Shown: one piece after another, positions 4,953 through 21,689 of the stretch
Position numbering within the stretch: the first letter of the stretch is position 1
Layout of the letters: every line of letters begins with the position of its first letter
DNA from: Epithemia pelagica
Lineage: Eukaryota > Protista > Bacillariophyta
Direction: 5' to 3'
DNA: 64,000 nt
NCBI GenBank assembly: GCA_946965045.2
Contig: OX337232.1
Location: 1,860,001-1,924,000, forward strand
The notes under the pieces: generated by a model
Databases searched by the model: none
Seen by the model: the letters and a program-made list of their open reading frames with translations, nothing else
What the model was told of the DNA's origin: nothing
Program-made: the position numbers and the translations under genes

Positions 4953-6791
4953 ATGACTGGAAATACGCCTTCGCTACCCTTACCAATATCCACAGATGAA
5001 GACAAGGATACCCAACAGGATGACTTGGTGGATTGGTAGGGTTTGACGTGTGACTGACCGACATGTTCTTTTCCCATAGCCCCCGTCGTCCCCCGTCATC
5101 CCCCGTTTTCCCCCGTTACAAACTCTTAGTAGTGTACTAGTACAATAACTATTTTCCGGACTCCGGACACGGACACGGACAAGTATTGTACGAGTCCGAG
5201 CGACACAAATCACAATACAAAATACAAAGTACAAGTACAAATTACCAATTACCACCAATTACCAATTAGCAATAAAAATGTCTTACAACAGCTATCAGAC
5301 AATGGATAACTGGAAACGTGTTGGGGGTTGGGGAGGCTCTCCCCTTACGAGTAATGATCTATGTGGACTGACAGTACCGAGCATCGAACATCATGCAACT
5401 CGTGTCCTCTTATTTAGGGCGTTATGGTATTTTTATCAAGGAATGAATTTCCAGAACCATTGTCAGTGTCAGTCGTGTCCCGGTAGGTTCGGTATTCACG
5501 GGCAATAGTAGGAGCTCGTTCTTGATGGCATCCCATTTTGTCCCAACCAGATTTCAGTATGGGACCGACTGACTGAAACACATGTGTTGGGTGTTGTTGG
5601 TCTTCACTTGTTTCTTTTTTTCTCGGTTCGTGGTGGTGATTGGGCCCTTCCCCCTCGTTTCATGTGTTTGATGTGGCATTTCTCTTGTGGTGGTCGTGGT
5701 GGTCTTTCTCCCCAATCTTACAGACCTTCTTGAAAACACCATCACAAAAGGACCTTTTTGGTTACTCCAGCAAAAAGCCTCAAGAGTCACTTTGTAACCC
5801 CGTGGGTTTGTTATTTCGACAGGTAGAAGAAGAAGAACAACAAGAGTGCATTCCCACGCCAACAAATACTACTTCTTTGTGAGTACCAACGAACACATCT
5901 TGCGACCATCACATTGAAAATAGTGCGGATTGTTTTTCCCGTTTTGACTGCGAAAATTGAAGCAACTACATCCAAACGACTAGAACAAGACGAGACACTA
6001 AAAGAAGACACAAGAACCAAACCAAGATGACACCTTCTTCGCTGTTTCTGCTGACAGTAATGATGCTGGTCCTTCAGGCCACTTCCTCGTCGTCCTTAGT
6101 ACAACAAGAACAAGGGACAGAACGAAAGGAAACACAAAAACAACAAGAAGAAGAACACCACTACGATGCGGCTCCTTTCTTCTCTCCCCTTCTCTCCTTT
6201 TACCACCAGCCGTCATGGTCCCAGTCGTCGTCGTCATCATCTGTGGTATCACCACCAGCACGCTCCAAGACGCCTACGGCAACTCTTCCTCTCCTACGAC
6301 CACCCTCGGCGTCCTCCTTGTCGGCGACTCCACCAGCCGGCCACCCCGAATCTCTTCCGACTGTTTCTCCTCCTTCGTTTCAACAACAAGACCGGCGCAC
6401 CAAGTAAGAGGAGGACCGTACAAAGAAGACTGCTGATGAAGTGAGTACTGTCATTACTCAGATTCATAAACTAAAGCAGCCACTTCCGATCGATATGAAC
6501 GAAGACTACGAGAGGGTCGACATGGAACACCAACCACACTTACCATCTTCTTCCGAAGCAACTAAACCTTTGACGGCTGGCAACCCGCCCGAACCAGCTC
6601 CTCGTGCTCGTGGCGTCCGGCAACGTCGTGTCAAGAAAACCAAAAATGTGTTTTCGAAAGCTTCCAAGGAAGACCCTCCACAGCGGTGGTAGCAGCAAAA
6701 CCCAAAAGGGGAAGGGTGGGGGAAGCAGCAAGTCCTCTACAAGCTCAGACGGCAGCTCGAAAAAGAGCAAAAGAAAAAATCGGAAAAGAGC

Positions 6792-6881
6792 AAAAGCGAA
6801 AAGTCCCCCAAAAGCGAAAAGTCCCCCAAAAGCGAAAAGTCCCTCAAAAGCGAAAAGTCCCCCAAAAGCGAAAAGTCCTCC
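6792..6881 (+). repeat. 18-nt tandem repeat x5 (AAAAGCGAAAAGTCCCCC, encoding KSEKSP)
   Basis: Five near-perfect copies read directly from the sequence. Confidence 0.95.
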
Positions 6882-7019
6882 AAAAGTTCCGTCGACGATA
6901 CACCTACCTCTTTGCCAACAACAACTCCGACTGCACTTCCAACGCCCGAAACCAAAAGTCCGACCACGGCACCAACAGGTACTCCCACAGATCAACCCAC
7001 TATTGCGCCCACTGAACAA

Positions 7020-8732
7020 CCAACATCGCAACCAACATCGCAGCCCACATCGCAGCCAACTGCACAGTCAACCTCGCAGCCAACGTCTCAGCCAACATCA
7101 CAGCCAACTGCACAGCCAACAGCCCCAACATCGCAGCCAACGTCACAACCATCAGCTCCAACGACTCAGCCAACGTCACAGCCAACAGCCCCTACATCGC
7201 AACCAACGTCACAGCCAACATCGCAGCCAACTGCACAGCCAACGTCTCAGCCAACATCGCAGCCAACCTCGCAGCCAACGTCGCAGCCAACATCCTCAAC
7301 ATCTCAGCCAACGTCACAGCCAACAGCCCCAACTTCGCAGCCAACGTCACAGCCAACAGCCCCAACATCGCAGCCCACATCGCAGCCAACATCGCAGCCA
7401 ACATCGCAGCCAACATCGCAGCCAACATCGCAGCCAACCTCGCAGCCAACGTCTCAGCCAACATCACAGCCAACATTACAGCCAACCTCGCAGCCAACAT
7501 CACAGCCAACATCACAGCCAACAGCCCCAACGTCGCAGCCAACTTCACAGCCAACAGCCCCAACGTCGCAGCCAACTTCACAGCCAACAGCCCCAGCGTC
7601 GCAGCCAACGTCGCAGCCAACAGCCCCAACATCGCAACCAACATCGCAGCCAACATCGCAGCCAACATCGCAGCCCACATCGCAGCCCACATCGCAGCCA
7701 ACTGCACAGCCAACCTCGCAGCCAACGTCCCAGCCAACGTCTCAGCCAACTGCGCAGCCAACATCACAGCCAACAGCCCCAACGTCGCAGCCAACGTCAC
7801 AGCCAACAGCACCAACTTCTCAGCCAACGTCACAGCCAACAGCCCCAACATCGCAACCAACATCGCAACCAACGTCGCAGCCCACATCTCAGCCAACTGC
7901 ACAGCCAACCTCGCAGCCAACGTCTCAGCCAACATCACAGCCAACGTCGCAGCCAACTGCGCAGCCAACATCACAGCCAACAGCCCCAACATCGCAGCCA
8001 ACGTCACAGCCAACAGCCCCAACGTCTCAGCCAACGTCACAGCCAACAGCCCCAACGTCTCAGCCCACATCGCAGCCAACTGCACAGCCAACGTCTGAGC
8101 CAACGTCACAGCCTACATCGCAGCCAACATCGCAGCCAACGTCGCAGCCAACATCGCAACCAACGTCACAGCCAACATCGCAGCCAACATCGCAGCCAAC
8201 CTCGCAGCCAACGTCTCAGCCAACATCACAGCCAACATTACAGCCAACCTCGCAGCCAACATCACAGCCAACATCACAGCCAACAGCCCCAACGTCGCAG
8301 CCAACTTCACAGCCAACAGCCCCAACGTCGCAGCCAACTTCACAGCCAACAGCCCCAACGTCGCAGCCAACGTCGCAGCCAACAGCCCCAACATCGCAAC
8401 CAACATCGCAGCCAACATCGCAGCCCACATCGCAGCCCACATCGCAGCCAACTGCACAGCCAACGTCTCAGCCAACATCACAGCCAACGTCTCAGCCAAC
8501 TGCGCAGCTAACATCACAGCCAACAGCCCCAACATCGCAGCCAACGTCACAGCCAACAGCCCCAACGTCTCAGCCAACGTCACAGCCAACAGCCCCAATG
8601 TCTCAGCCCACATCGCAGCCAACTGCACAGCCAACGTCTGAGCCAACGTCACAGCCTACATCGCAGCCAACATCGCAGCCAACGTCGCAGCCAACATCGC
8701 AACTAACGTCACAGCCAACATCGCAGCCAACG
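7020..8732 (+). repeat. Coding minisatellite of 12-nt PTSQ and 9-nt PTA units with higher-order duplications
   Basis: CCAACATCGCAG-type units. Rare variants recur at long spacing: PTLQ near 7471 and 8233; PTSE near 8092 and 8632. Confidence 0.97.
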
Positions 8733-19562: not shown

Positions 19563-21689
19563 TTATTGTAGCTTTTCTTTGACTCTGAAACTGACACACA
19601 CTCGCAGTTGGCGCATGGCAACGCTTCCTGCATTAGCCACGTGTTGGATCTCAGCCTTTAGACCAAACTCCTCGCACACCCTTTCCAACACTTGACGTGT
19701 TCGAAGGCAAGTTGGAAACTCATGATCCGCGGCAAAGTCGTACCAATGACACTCTCCACCATCAGGTTTCATGACAGGGAGCAATGCTTTCAAGAACGCT
19801 ACCCCGCCATCTCCCGTCCCCAAGTCTCCGTCATGGGATCCCTCTTTTGGCCTTGGTGCAACAATACGGTCATAATGTCGACGGGGAAGGGTTGGAAGGA
19901 TTTCTAGGACATCTCCATGTATGATTTCCAACCGGTCGGCCGCTCCTCCGCACTTGATACCCTTGTTGCGTTCTAACATTCGCTTTGATCGCAAAGCACA
20001 TTGGACCGCAATCTCATTCTGTTCAATGGCCGTTACCGAAAGAGCTTCCGTTCTTCCAGCAATTTGCATTGCGTCCATGCCCACTCCACAGAAAAGCACC
20101 AGGACGTGTTCTCCTCGTGCCACTTGCTGACATAATCGAAGTCTTTCTTGTCCCATTCGTGGAGTGAAAAATGTATGGGTTAAATCTACGACGCATTTGA
20201 TTCCGTACTCGCTATGAGTTGTGATGAGAGGCGATCGATCTGCCCCTGCAATTATCTGGAAGCCCCCTTCACCTGGTGCACGTTCCGGTCCCTGCATGTT
20301 CGACTGGCGGACAACAACTACCCGAATAGCCTTATTCCGTTGCATGATTGCTTCCCCAATCGCACGTTGTTCTTCCTCGTTGGTTGTTGCAATTGCATGT
20401 AACACAGCGATATCTCCAACAATGTCAAAACTGCGAGGTATTCTCCACTCACCAGGCAAGGACGAAGAAACGGATTCATTATCGACGATCTCGGGATCCC
20501 ATTTATTCACATCATCATCGAATTCATCTACTACAGTTGACATGCCTCGGACAGATAGAACAAATCGATCTATCTTCGACCAATTTCTTTCATGTCTCTC
20601 GTTAACCAAGGATGCTAACCACTCTGCGACTTCTGGGTCTTGTTTCCTGTTCCTAGTACCATAAAGCGGCGTTCCGTTCGGCATACAGAGAGGCATTTCT
20701 AATCCTTCATCGCCCCAAATGGCCACGATAAAACGCGATCCATCGTGTTGGTCATTGTCACATGTCCACGTTGTCAGACCAACGTTTTTGAATGCTGGTC
20801 GAGCAGCATCCATTAAAGCTGATGCTGATTTCAACGATCGACAGGCGACGTGCAGAATAAATGGTTCGAAACGCAGCCATACTGATTGGTCCACTTCATC
20901 ATTTACTTTCTTGTCCTCCATGGAAGCTGTCTGGTCTCTTGTACCAGTTTGACTGGGCCATGCCTCACTTTCTTTACTCATACCGATAGGCGACAAATCA
21001 GCCTTCTCCCCGCGATCTGAAGAAGTGGCCATCTGAGATTCTGTTTTCTCATTCTCAAGCAAGTGATCATACTGACCAATAGGACGAATTGGGTCTCCTC
21101 CACCCGATGGGTCCGACTCAAGTGATGAAAGGTCAAAGTATCGATCAGGGTCTCTAATCAAGTCATGGGAAACACGGTATCTCACAAAATGTGGTTGATA
21201 TTGCTGTTGCGGTGTCGTAACTGAAGACCCTAACTCAGTTTCTTTGTTGTCGCTATCCGTTGAGACGACGACACGAGCAAGGTTGTGGGATGATTTGACT
21301 CCTCGTCCCCGATATAGAAAACACCGTCCAGCGCAAGAGCTTGTTGTATAGAAGCAATCAAACTTTTCATTAATCAATCCACAAATCTCTACTGCCTTGG
21401 GGTCAATACGACCAGCCGAAGATTTGTCACGTTTCCCCATGACCTGATTCTTGCTGTTCTGAAAGTTTTTGACATGTCGTCGTCGTCGGTTCTTCCCATG
21501 CTGTTGTTCCAGAAAAGATCTCCCATCAAGGGCAGCTCCTCCGGATTCTCTACTCTCTCCCAGAGAGGTTACTAACGGAGCAACGTGTTCCATTCGGGCG
21601 GTGCTACGGCGCTGTTGCCGATGTTCATTGTTCATCGTCGAACAAACATCGACTGGGGTATAATTTAACCCCAACCCTAACTGTATCAT
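19563..21689 (-). CDS. Fusion of TYW3/Taw3 and a Trm5/TYW2-fold SAM-dependent tRNA modification domain (start uncertain)
   Basis: N-half: IDPKAVEIC..IN..FYTTSSCAGR and LRFEPFILHVACRSL (TYW3). C-half: SFDIVGDIAVL, THSEYG..DL..FFTPRM..ER, VLFCGVG, DRIVAPRPK, HWYDF. Confidence 0.88.
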   Translation of the reverse strand: MIQLGLGLNYTPVDVCSTMNNEHRQQRRSTARMEHVAPLVTSLGESRESGGAALDGRSFLEQQHGKNRRRRHVKNFQNSKNQVMGKRDKSSAGRIDPKAVEICGLINEKFDCFYTTSSCAGRCFLYRGRGVKSSHNLARVVVSTDSDNKETELGSSVTTPQQQYQPHFVRYRVSHDLIRDPDRYFDLSSLESDPSGGGDPIRPIGQYDHLLENEKTESQMATSSDRGEKADLSPIGMSKESEAWPSQTGTRDQTASMEDKKVNDEVDQSVWLRFEPFILHVACRSLKSASALMDAARPAFKNVGLTTWTCDNDQHDGSRFIVAIWGDEGLEMPLCMPNGTPLYGTRNRKQDPEVAEWLASLVNERHERNWSKIDRFVLSVRGMSTVVDEFDDDVNKWDPEIVDNESVSSSLPGEWRIPRSFDIVGDIAVLHAIATTNEEEQRAIGEAIMQRNKAIRVVVVRQSNMQGPERAPGEGGFQIIAGADRSPLITTHSEYGIKCVVDLTHTFFTPRMGQERLRLCQQVARGEHVLVLFCGVGMDAMQIAGRTEALSVTAIEQNEIAVQCALRSKRMLERNKGIKCGGAADRLEIIHGDVLEILPTLPRRHYDRIVAPRPKEGSHDGDLGTGDGGVAFLKALLPVMKPDGGECHWYDFAADHEFPTCLRTRQVLERVCEEFGLKAEIQHVANAGSVAMRQLRVCVSFRVKEKLQ

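Follow-up and report, generated by a model that had tools for sequence, protein, structure and literature searches.

In this study, we describe a gene of the diatom Epithemia pelagica whose product joins a TYW3-like domain to a methyltransferase domain of the archaeal Trm5a/Taw22 type. The gene lies at 19563-21689, on the reverse strand of a stretch of 64,000 nucleotides (contig OX337232.1, positions 1,860,001 to 1,924,000), which we refer to as the window. The assignment of the C-terminal domain to the Trm5a/Taw22 type, and neither to TYW2 nor to ordinary Trm5, is supported, since phylogeny, an approximately unbiased (AU) test of tree topology, diagnostic residues, the ranking of NCBIfam profiles and of sequences in the PDB, and a fold search all agree on it. 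Trm5a and Taw22 are one archaeal enzyme (P. abyssi PAB2272, PDB 5HJI/5WT1; N. equitans NEQ228), a bifunctional methyltransferase of tRNA-Phe that forms 1-methylguanosine at position 37 (m1G37) and methylates C7 of 4-demethylwyosine (imG-14). It has been stated that Taw22 "has no homologs in eukaryotes" (PMC4024628), and isowyosine (imG2) as well as 7-methylwyosine (mimG) have been called "archaea-unique" (PMC7761594). The gene described here probably encodes a two-domain enzyme of the wyosine pathway of tRNA-Phe, with a layout not described before.

The phylogenetic placement comes from a careful maximum-likelihood (ML) tree of 72 rows and 260 columns under LG+C20, the rows being a subset of those in a quick tree of 120 rows that gives the same picture. 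The eukaryotic fusion proteins form a clade of their own (support 100/99), which groups with the Thermococcales Taw22 reference and one transcript of the MMETSP collection (91/93) and is contained in the clade of all proteins with a PxPK motif, that is, the Trm5a clade (97/93). Taw2 and the TYW2 of the E. pelagica genome itself, of which the C-terminal open reading frame (ORF) piece alone entered the trees, form a separate clade (100/99), and the genome's own TRM5 genes fall among the NLP-type Trm5b proteins (92/95). A joint clade of the fusion family with Taw2/TYW2 was rejected by the AU test (p-AU 0.016, delta lnL 60). The reference paralogues were taken from one Thermococcales genome and labelled by the NCBIfam cut-offs (Taw22, 625 bits with a cut-off of 550; Trm5b, 612 with 600; Taw2, 571 with 550), the Taw22 reference scoring 452 bits against P. 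abyssi Trm5a (PaTrm5a); references for Taw21 and Trm5c are absent from the trees. A preliminary description, made from the DNA letters, had read the domain as Trm5a/Taw22-like, and tree, AU test, residues, profiles and fold bear this out, neither tree grouping the domain with TYW2 or ordinary Trm5.

The same order of relatives is obtained by profile, sequence and structure comparison. Among the NCBIfam models, that of Taw22 gives the domain the highest score (107.8 bits), followed by Trm5b (85.2), Taw21 (54.9) and Taw2 (38.2), each well short of its narrow equivalog cut-off, and a sequence search of the PDB ranks PaTrm5a (84 bits) above PaTrm5b (68), MjTrm5b (50) and PhTaw2 (33). The AlphaFold model, built from 14 orthologues, has a predicted local distance difference test (pLDDT) score of ~85-95 over residues 420-708, and Foldseek against the PDB places the PaTrm5a entries first, with a root-mean-square deviation of 2.5-2.7 A over 284 columns and 31% identity, and then PaTrm5b and Taw2. 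With phmmer, no match of the domain was found to the genome's own TYW2 or to the first of its TRM5 genes (L021), and the second (L022) scored 28 bits, compared with ~100 bits for archaeal Trm5a-like proteins.

The residues that distinguish the subfamilies are well characterized. PaTrm5a reads 260-PTPK-263 where MjTrm5b reads 265-NLPK-268; in Trm5b, the third ring of imG-14 runs into the side chain of the Asn, Pro leaves room for this ring, F284 of PaTrm5a contacts the modelled imG-14, and K324 has been proposed to hydrogen-bond to it (PMC5714064). The first position of this NPPY-equivalent motif is Asn or Asp in Trm5b/c and Pro or Thr in Trm5a, motif A has the form MxSxxNxxxR/K in Taw2, and Taw21 shows Y-E-H where the others show E-R (PMC5113207). 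The critical Gly of Taw2 at the position of MjTrm5b N265 is G199 in PhTaw2 (PMC7761594, PMC5113207). The corresponding elements of the diatom domain, all on the reverse strand, are:

20142..20171 (-): FFTPRMGQER, a Trm5-type motif A, with F507 equivalent to PaTrm5a F165 and E515-R516 to E173-R174
19845..19856 (-): PRPK, the NPPY-equivalent motif, with Pro where Trm5b/TRM5 has Asn and Taw2/TYW2 has Gly
19803..19844 (-): EGSHDGDLGTGDGG, an acidic, Gly-rich insert of 14 residues directly after PRPK, present in the eukaryotic family only
19734..19748 (-): HWYDF, matching HYYDF of PaTrm5a, with F652 equivalent to F284
19602..19604 (-): R696, equivalent in position to PaTrm5a K324

The motifs named in the preliminary description (NLP in Trm5, a different one in TYW2, PTPK and then HYYDF in Trm5a) are those that the sequences carry: NLPK in MjTrm5b, GLLPSS in the genome's own TYW2, and SPTPK...LHYYDF in PaTrm5a, with DRVVSPTPKGVD around the motif. 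The string YDRIVAPRPK, which it had put at 19845-19856, is present, but as a whole it spans 19845-19874, the shorter interval being PRPK alone; HWYDF follows, as had been noticed. The FFTPRMGQER stretch differs both from the Taw2/TYW2 form of motif A and from the YEH form of Taw21, and the EGSHDGDLGTGDGG region has a pLDDT below 50 at residues 616-625. The diagnostic columns, numbered as in PaTrm5a, were scored over 120 sequences (28 of the eukaryotic family, 61 archaeal or bacterial PxPK relatives, 22 Trm5b/TRM5 and 9 Taw2/TYW2), as follows:

P260: Pro in 28/28 of the eukaryotic family and 60/61 PxPK relatives; Asn in 17 and Asp in 2 of 22 Trm5b/TRM5; Gly in 9/9 Taw2/TYW2
F165: Phe in 28/28 of the eukaryotic family; Tyr in 54 and Phe in 7 PxPK relatives; Tyr in 19 and Phe in 3 Trm5b/TRM5; Met in 9 Taw2/TYW2
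R174: Arg in 28/28 of the eukaryotic family and 61 PxPK relatives; Arg in 17 and His in 5 Trm5b/TRM5; Arg in 7 and Lys in 2 Taw2/TYW2
F284: Phe in 28/28 of the eukaryotic family and 55/61 PxPK relatives; Phe in 14 and Ile in 6 Trm5b/TRM5; Asn, Thr, Leu or Ala in Taw2/TYW2
K324: Arg in 24 and Lys in 1 of 28 of the eukaryotic family; Arg in 50/61 PxPK relatives; mostly Gln, His, Ile or Met in Trm5b/TRM5; His in 9 Taw2/TYW2

The Phe at position 165 is common to the eukaryotic family and the Thermococcales Taw22 reference. At positions E173-R174, all 28 eukaryotic members read E-R, as opposed to the E-H of Taw21, so that motif A is in the Taw22 state rather than in the Y-E-H state of Taw21.

The gene is a single uninterrupted frame of 708 codons plus a stop, and its 708-residue product can be aligned over the full length with 13 orthologues. 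Its layout is:

19563..21689 (-): whole gene, with the ATG at 21689 and the stop codon at 19563-19565; an intron is not needed
21480..21689 (-): N-terminal ~70 residues, unconserved and predicted to be disordered, with pLDDT below 50 for residues 1-57
20556..21452 (-): TYW3/Taw3-like N4-methyltransferase domain, residues 80-378 (Pfam PF02676, 116.6 bits with a cut-off of 27)
~21192-21296 and ~20895-21092 (-): two variable low-complexity inserts inside the TYW3 domain, residues ~132-166 and ~200-265
20241..20474 (-): D2-like domain, residues 406-483, from Pfam, alignment and model
19566..20222 (-): Rossmann methyltransferase domain of the Trm5a/Taw22 type, residues 490-708, from Pfam, NCBIfam, PDB sequence and fold ranking, and tree

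Within the C-terminal half, Pfam (PF25133 and PF02475) recognizes TYW2_N_2 at residues 406-483, which corresponds to the D2 domain of Trm5-family enzymes, and TRM5-TYW2_MTfase at residues 490-675 (59.1 bits, with a cut-off of 28). The D1 domain is absent, its place being taken by the TYW3 domain and a disordered linker; this absence is seen in many Trm5a proteins, though not in PaTrm5a. Pfam detected no Kelch family in the 708-residue protein, and thus confirms the earlier observation that a TYW3 domain is joined to a Trm5-fold domain without Kelch repeats. The two-domain layout is shared by hundreds of homologues, so a chance juxtaposition is not a concern. At the N-terminus, M1, M19 and M33 are all candidate starts; in the orthologue alignment, conservation begins near F76 and no conserved targeting peptide is found in the N-terminal stretch, and most orthologues begin 10-20 residues upstream of the TYW3 domain, without the ~70-residue extension.

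The N-terminal domain retains the residues of its class. Eight residues (an Asp, the signature (S/T)xSSCxGR and a His) define the TYW3/Taw3 proteins, three of them being essential in yeast (PMC5311493), and all are found here on the reverse strand:

21402..21404 (-): D96, the invariant Asp that binds S-adenosylmethionine (SAM), equivalent to SsTaw3 D25 and ScTYW3 D32 (PMC5311493)
21324..21347 (-): TTSSCAGR, the (S/T)xSSCxGR signature, invariant in the orthologue alignment
21165..21167 (-): H175, the invariant His, equivalent to SsTaw3 H73 (PMC5311493)

Indeed D96, T115-x-S117-S118-C119-x-G121-R122 and H175 are invariant in the 14 full-length orthologues, among which both inserts of the domain are gapped or variable; they are modelled as disorder, with pLDDT below 50. 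In a tree of TYW3 domains, those of the fusion type form their own clade (100/100), outside both the canonical eukaryotic TYW3 proteins, including the genome's own TYW3-Kelch (100/98), and the sampled archaeal Taw3 (94/78); by BLASTP, the domain scores 33 bits against the genome's own canonical TYW3. The fused domain thus appears to be a third, deep and previously unrecognized lineage of the TYW3/Taw3 family.

A search of the E. pelagica genome (60.5 Mb in 23 contigs) shows that this enzyme stands beside the remaining genes of the wyosine pathway. TYW1 is present in two full-length copies and one fragmented copy, all of flavodoxin length and near-identical in the Wyosine_form domain, and no short organellar TYW1 was found. 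A separate TYW2 gene carries MFSRGNITEKVR and GLLPSS, a canonical TYW3-Kelch gene encodes 852 residues (L019:4291-6849, forward strand, C3 ~1632290-1634848), several genes for leucine carboxyl methyltransferases (LCM) occur, and there are two TRM5 genes, with the motifs NLP and NYP. The separate TRM5, TYW1 and TYW2 genes that the preliminary description had asked after were all found, and its suggestion that imG2/mimG is made rather than wybutosine (yW) is not supported, because TYW1, TYW2, TYW3-Kelch, LCM and both TRM5 genes accompany the fusion. The fusion thus supplements the wybutosine route as an extra branch and does not replace it. In its set of wyosine genes the genome resembles Thermococcales, which have Taw1, Taw2, Taw22, Trm5b and two Taw3 and carry yW-72, wyosine (imG) and mimG together (PMC7761594).

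Some of these genes show peculiarities of their own. The TYW1 copies lie at C1:5745590-5745826, C1:5753095-5753331 and C2:6280438-6280674 (L008, L009, L010) and have identical Wyosine_form scores; two copies are long and intact, and the remaining one, which lies on C1 and 7.5 kb downstream of the first, is split into a number of short frames. TYW2 is represented by two adjacent ORFs of 259 residues (L020:4631-5410 and L020:5502-6281, both on the reverse strand, C4 ~2916630-2918280), which were searched separately; the gap of ~90 bases that separates them could reflect an intron, a frameshift or a mistake in the assembly. The C-terminus of TYW3-Kelch resembles the N-terminal part of TYW2 (...KLRVKLEQAGWLDKRYRMTP...), with no TYW2 methyltransferase domain after it, and the gene looks like a TYW3-Kelch-TYW2 fusion that has lost or split off the catalytic part of TYW2. 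A 967-residue LCM gene (L147:2094-4997, reverse strand, on C10) was considered as TYW4 and rejected, since it combines LCM with a Rieske [2Fe-2S] domain, an unusual pairing, and has no Kelch; a near-identical twin lies at C4:2536-3120, at the start of that contig. In stramenopiles the Kelch part is carried on TYW3 (Iyer et al., PMC2938197), which fits an LCM gene without Kelch.

The family is widespread among algae. A word-index search with the C-terminal domain gave close diatom relatives only, and the wider range was covered by an exhaustive search of representative sequences. The fusion is found in the diatoms Seminavis robusta, Nitzschia inconspicua, Fistulifera solaris, Pseudo-nitzschia, Amphora, Cylindrotheca and Attheya, with 55-77% identity in the C-terminal domain, in the pelagophytes Aureococcus anophagefferens and Chrysophaeum taylorii, and in the dinoflagellate Pyrodinium bahamense. 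A partial protein of Thalassiosira spans the Trm5a-like domain only, and Chromera velia has this domain alone. The gene is expressed, as seen from MMETSP transcripts, and its database names are automatic ones: TYW3, Trm5 or "tRNA-yW synthesizing protein". The nearest prokaryotic relatives belong to Altiarchaeota, Woesearchaeota and Nanoarchaeota (including Nanopusillus) and to a few bacteria of the Desulfocapsaceae; no Thermococcales Trm5a is among the best 150 matches of the exhaustive search. Three archaeal genomes, those of Nanopusillus, of one member of the Altiarchaeota and of a euryarchaeon (a metagenome-assembled genome), show the Taw22 configuration, in which the PxPK protein is the sole strong Trm5-family gene and occurs together with Taw1 and Taw3.

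Several members of the wider family deserve mention in their own right. The product of one MMETSP transcript (P0355, 364 residues), which contains DRIVAPRPK, is a second Trm5a-like sequence from a eukaryote and a very divergent one; it falls outside the fusion clade, on a long branch near the Thermococcales Taw22. Bacteria normally use TrmD and carry A37 in tRNA-Phe. The Desulfocapsaceae Desulfosediminicola, Desulfopila and Desulfofustis nevertheless encode a protein like archaeal Trm5a, which falls within the PxPK clade (L052:6001-6747, L082:6001-6759, P0260). Four archaeal Trm5a-like proteins, P0278 (647 residues), P0316, P0343 and P0344 (~595 residues), are about twice the usual length: P0278 has an N-terminal extension of ~380 residues, and each of the other three aligns with the query over two stretches, so that these may be tandem Trm5 domains.

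Comparison with known systems helps to place the diatom enzyme. It resembles PaTrm5a in the D2-D3 fold, in Pro-x-Pro-Lys instead of Asn-Leu-Pro-Lys, in FF(N/T)PRMxxER, in H(Y/W)YDF and in a basic residue at K324, and it differs from it in the middle residue of the motif (Arg, not Thr), in the 14-residue insert after the motif and in overall identity (~31%). Like Taw22, it is accompanied by a 4-demethylwyosine synthase, here TYW1 elsewhere in the genome, and by an enzyme of the Taw3 type, here the TYW3-like domain fused to it; unlike Taw22, it is eukaryotic and nuclear-encoded, has no D1 and is fused behind a TYW3-like domain. With Taw21 (S. solfataricus SSO2439, a monofunctional imG-14 C7-methyltransferase) it shares the absence of D1 and the Pro/Thr choice at the first NPPY position, and like Taw21 it would work beside a separate m1G37 enzyme, which this genome has; it departs from Taw21 in motif A, with E-R instead of Y-E-H, and in a Taw21 profile score half that of Taw22. 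The TYW3-(Kelch)-TYW2 fusions of plants, chlorophytes, stramenopiles and apicomplexans also place TYW3 first and join it to a COG2520-family enzyme that would, in both cases, act on C7 of imG-14. There, however, the partner is TYW2 and not of the Trm5a type; the diatom fusion has no Kelch, its TYW3 domain belongs to another clade, and a canonical TYW3-Kelch gene is present separately. Such fusions are a known pattern of joining enzymes that act successively on the same base, and the proposed one fits it. Finally, Trypanosoma brucei has a second TYW3 paralogue and, with TYW1S, an archaeal-style short branch that makes imG in mitochondria beside a full yW pathway (PMC4417183), but that branch has no Trm5a-type enzyme and yields imG, not imG2/mimG, and neither a short TYW1 nor a conserved presequence was found in the diatom case.

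On balance, and with a confidence only slightly better than even, we favour a model in which the fusion protein converts imG-14 to imG2 and then to mimG on cytosolic tRNA-Phe, in parallel to the wybutosine route. TYW1 would make imG-14 on tRNA-Phe; the Trm5a-like domain, with Pro in place of the blocking Asn of Trm5b presumably admitting the tricyclic base, would methylate its C7 to give imG2, and the TYW3-like domain would then methylate N4 to give mimG. This second branch from imG-14 would draw on the same tRNA-Phe pool as the canonical TYW2/TYW3-Kelch/LCM route, as in Thermococcales. The enzyme is probably cytosolic or nuclear, because the N-terminal ~70 residues are unconserved and absent from most orthologues. 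The domain is not needed for m1G37, since TRM5 is present twice, and a Taw22-like dual activity that also covers m1G37 may nevertheless be retained. Of the imG2/mimG proposal in the preliminary description, the gene content for the path from imG-14 to imG2 and mimG stands, and the products themselves are predictions from it. A broader proposal, which we advance more tentatively and at somewhat less than even confidence, is that diatoms, pelagophytes and dinoflagellates carry imG2 and/or mimG at position 37 of cytosolic tRNA-Phe, made by a fused Taw3-Taw22-like enzyme in competition with TYW2; cells could then alternate between two methyl groups, which are cheap, and the side chain of wybutosine, which is costly, perhaps tuning frameshifting.

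Several observations weigh against this model or parts of it. The equivalog cut-offs failed for both candidate families (107.8 bits where Taw22, NF047728, demands 550, and 54.9 where Taw21, NF047729, demands 400); these models were built on narrow archaeal groups, and DPANN Trm5a-like proteins fail them too. No Taw21 above the cut-off was found among 81 relatives of one genome (G074), all of them small genomes. The grouping with Taw22 as sister (91/93) unites a pair of long branches, is not fully supported and comes from a tree without Taw21. Because the TYW3-like domain stands in its own clade, its substrate preference is not readable from orthology. The cell's separate TYW2 would be a competitor for imG-14, and the proposed compartment derives solely from the lack of a conserved presequence. 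In addition, no Taw1 or Taw3 was found in a 0.8-Mb archaeal genome with a PxPK protein (G005), and no Taw1 in the one Desulfocapsaceae genome checked, which also carries such a protein; the PxPK motif alone is thus no proof of C7 methylation or of wyosine work, and in genomes of this kind the family must have another task, presumably m1G37.

One alternative is that the C-terminal domain is an m1G37 methyltransferase only, perhaps specific for tRNA-Phe, the TYW3 domain N4-methylating imG-14 or yW-86, so that the fusion would link the pathway's first step to a late one and imG or ordinary yW intermediates would result. We regard it as unlikely. In its favour, Taw22 itself also makes m1G37 (PMC4024628, PMC5113207), several archaeal genomes, one of them without detected Taw1/Taw3, have no strong Trm5-family gene apart from the PxPK protein, and the motif A E-R and the P260-equivalent Pro, which PAB2272 needs for m1G formation (PMC5113207), are kept. 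However, two canonical TRM5 genes of the NLP/NYP type make a third m1G37 enzyme unnecessary, D1, which helps Trm5b to check the shape of the tRNA, is missing, and the strict conservation of the Pro, of F284 and of a basic residue at K324, all of which would accommodate imG-14, is left unexplained. Quite unlikely, in our opinion, is action on some other substrate, be it a different RNA or further tRNAs that carry G37 or a wyosine-type base, or the variant in which one of the two domains is catalytically idle and merely binds. Further M. jannaschii tRNAs do carry imG-14 or imG (PMC7761594), the eukaryotic family has inserts of its own, as the one after PRPK, and the TYW3-like domain is a separate deep clade; yet position 37 is the only known target of either parent family, and from diatoms to dinoflagellates neither domain varies in any of its catalytic and SAM-binding residues, which argues for two active sites.

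Service in an organelle, as a second, compartment-specific wyosine pathway comparable to the mitochondrial TYW1S/TYW3 of T. brucei, is improbable. Paralogous wyosine genes do serve mitochondria in kinetoplastids (PMC4417183), the N-terminal extension is Arg-rich, and the family occurs in lineages with red-type plastids. But the extension is unconserved and lacking from the many orthologues that start just before the TYW3 domain, inspection by eye reveals no hydrophobic signal peptide of the kind that diatom plastid import needs, TYW1 was found in the long form only, and bacterial-type organellar tRNA-Phe normally has A37 (PMC2938197). We consider it highly improbable that the protein is a TYW3-TYW2 fusion of the ordinary kind seen in chlorophytes and plants, whose C-terminal domain would transfer an aminocarboxypropyl group to give yW-86. 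Such fusions are well known (PMC2938197), the Pfam model does not separate Trm5 from TYW2, and UniRef labels the Aureococcus orthologue a yW-pathway enzyme; nevertheless, the two clades are separate and their union is rejected, Pro stands at the position of the critical Gly, FFTPRMGQER replaces MxSxxNxxxR/K, Taw2 is the lowest-scoring relative, and a separate TYW2 gene exists. An assignment of the domain to TYW2 was therefore rejected, and so was one to plain Trm5, the latter on PRPK, the lack of D1 and a tree position beyond the 97/93 branch.

What is new here is the clade of Trm5a in eukaryotes, the joining of this enzyme to a TYW3-like domain and the separate TYW3 lineage; the parts themselves are of known kinds. 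In targeted literature searches, no paper was found that connects Trm5a, imG2 or mimG with algae, though such proteins may have been noticed earlier. A well-supported clade of the Trm5a type in ecologically dominant algae contradicts the statement that there are no homologs in eukaryotes, and the "archaea-unique" statement can now be tested in a culturable, transformable diatom. If the model is true, this would be the first occurrence of imG2/mimG in eukaryotes and the first eukaryotic Trm5a, in lineages (diatoms, pelagophytes and dinoflagellates) that make up a large share of marine phytoplankton. Finding mimG or imG2 would change the catalogue of eukaryotic tRNA modifications and the automatic annotation of these proteins, now TYW3 or Trm5; it would redraw the evolution of the wyosine pathway, whether the enzyme was retained from the archaeal ancestor or reached the red-plastid lineages by a later transfer, and would make a soluble enzyme from a mesophile available for a reaction that has hitherto been studied in hyperthermophiles alone. 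Should only yW be found, the family would still be a new eukaryotic Trm5 paralogue in need of a function.

Apart from the gene, the window has one segment of unusual composition, at 6001-8000, with a GC content of 0.55, a GC skew of -0.37 and an AT skew of +0.40; elsewhere the GC content is ~0.47 and both skews are near zero.

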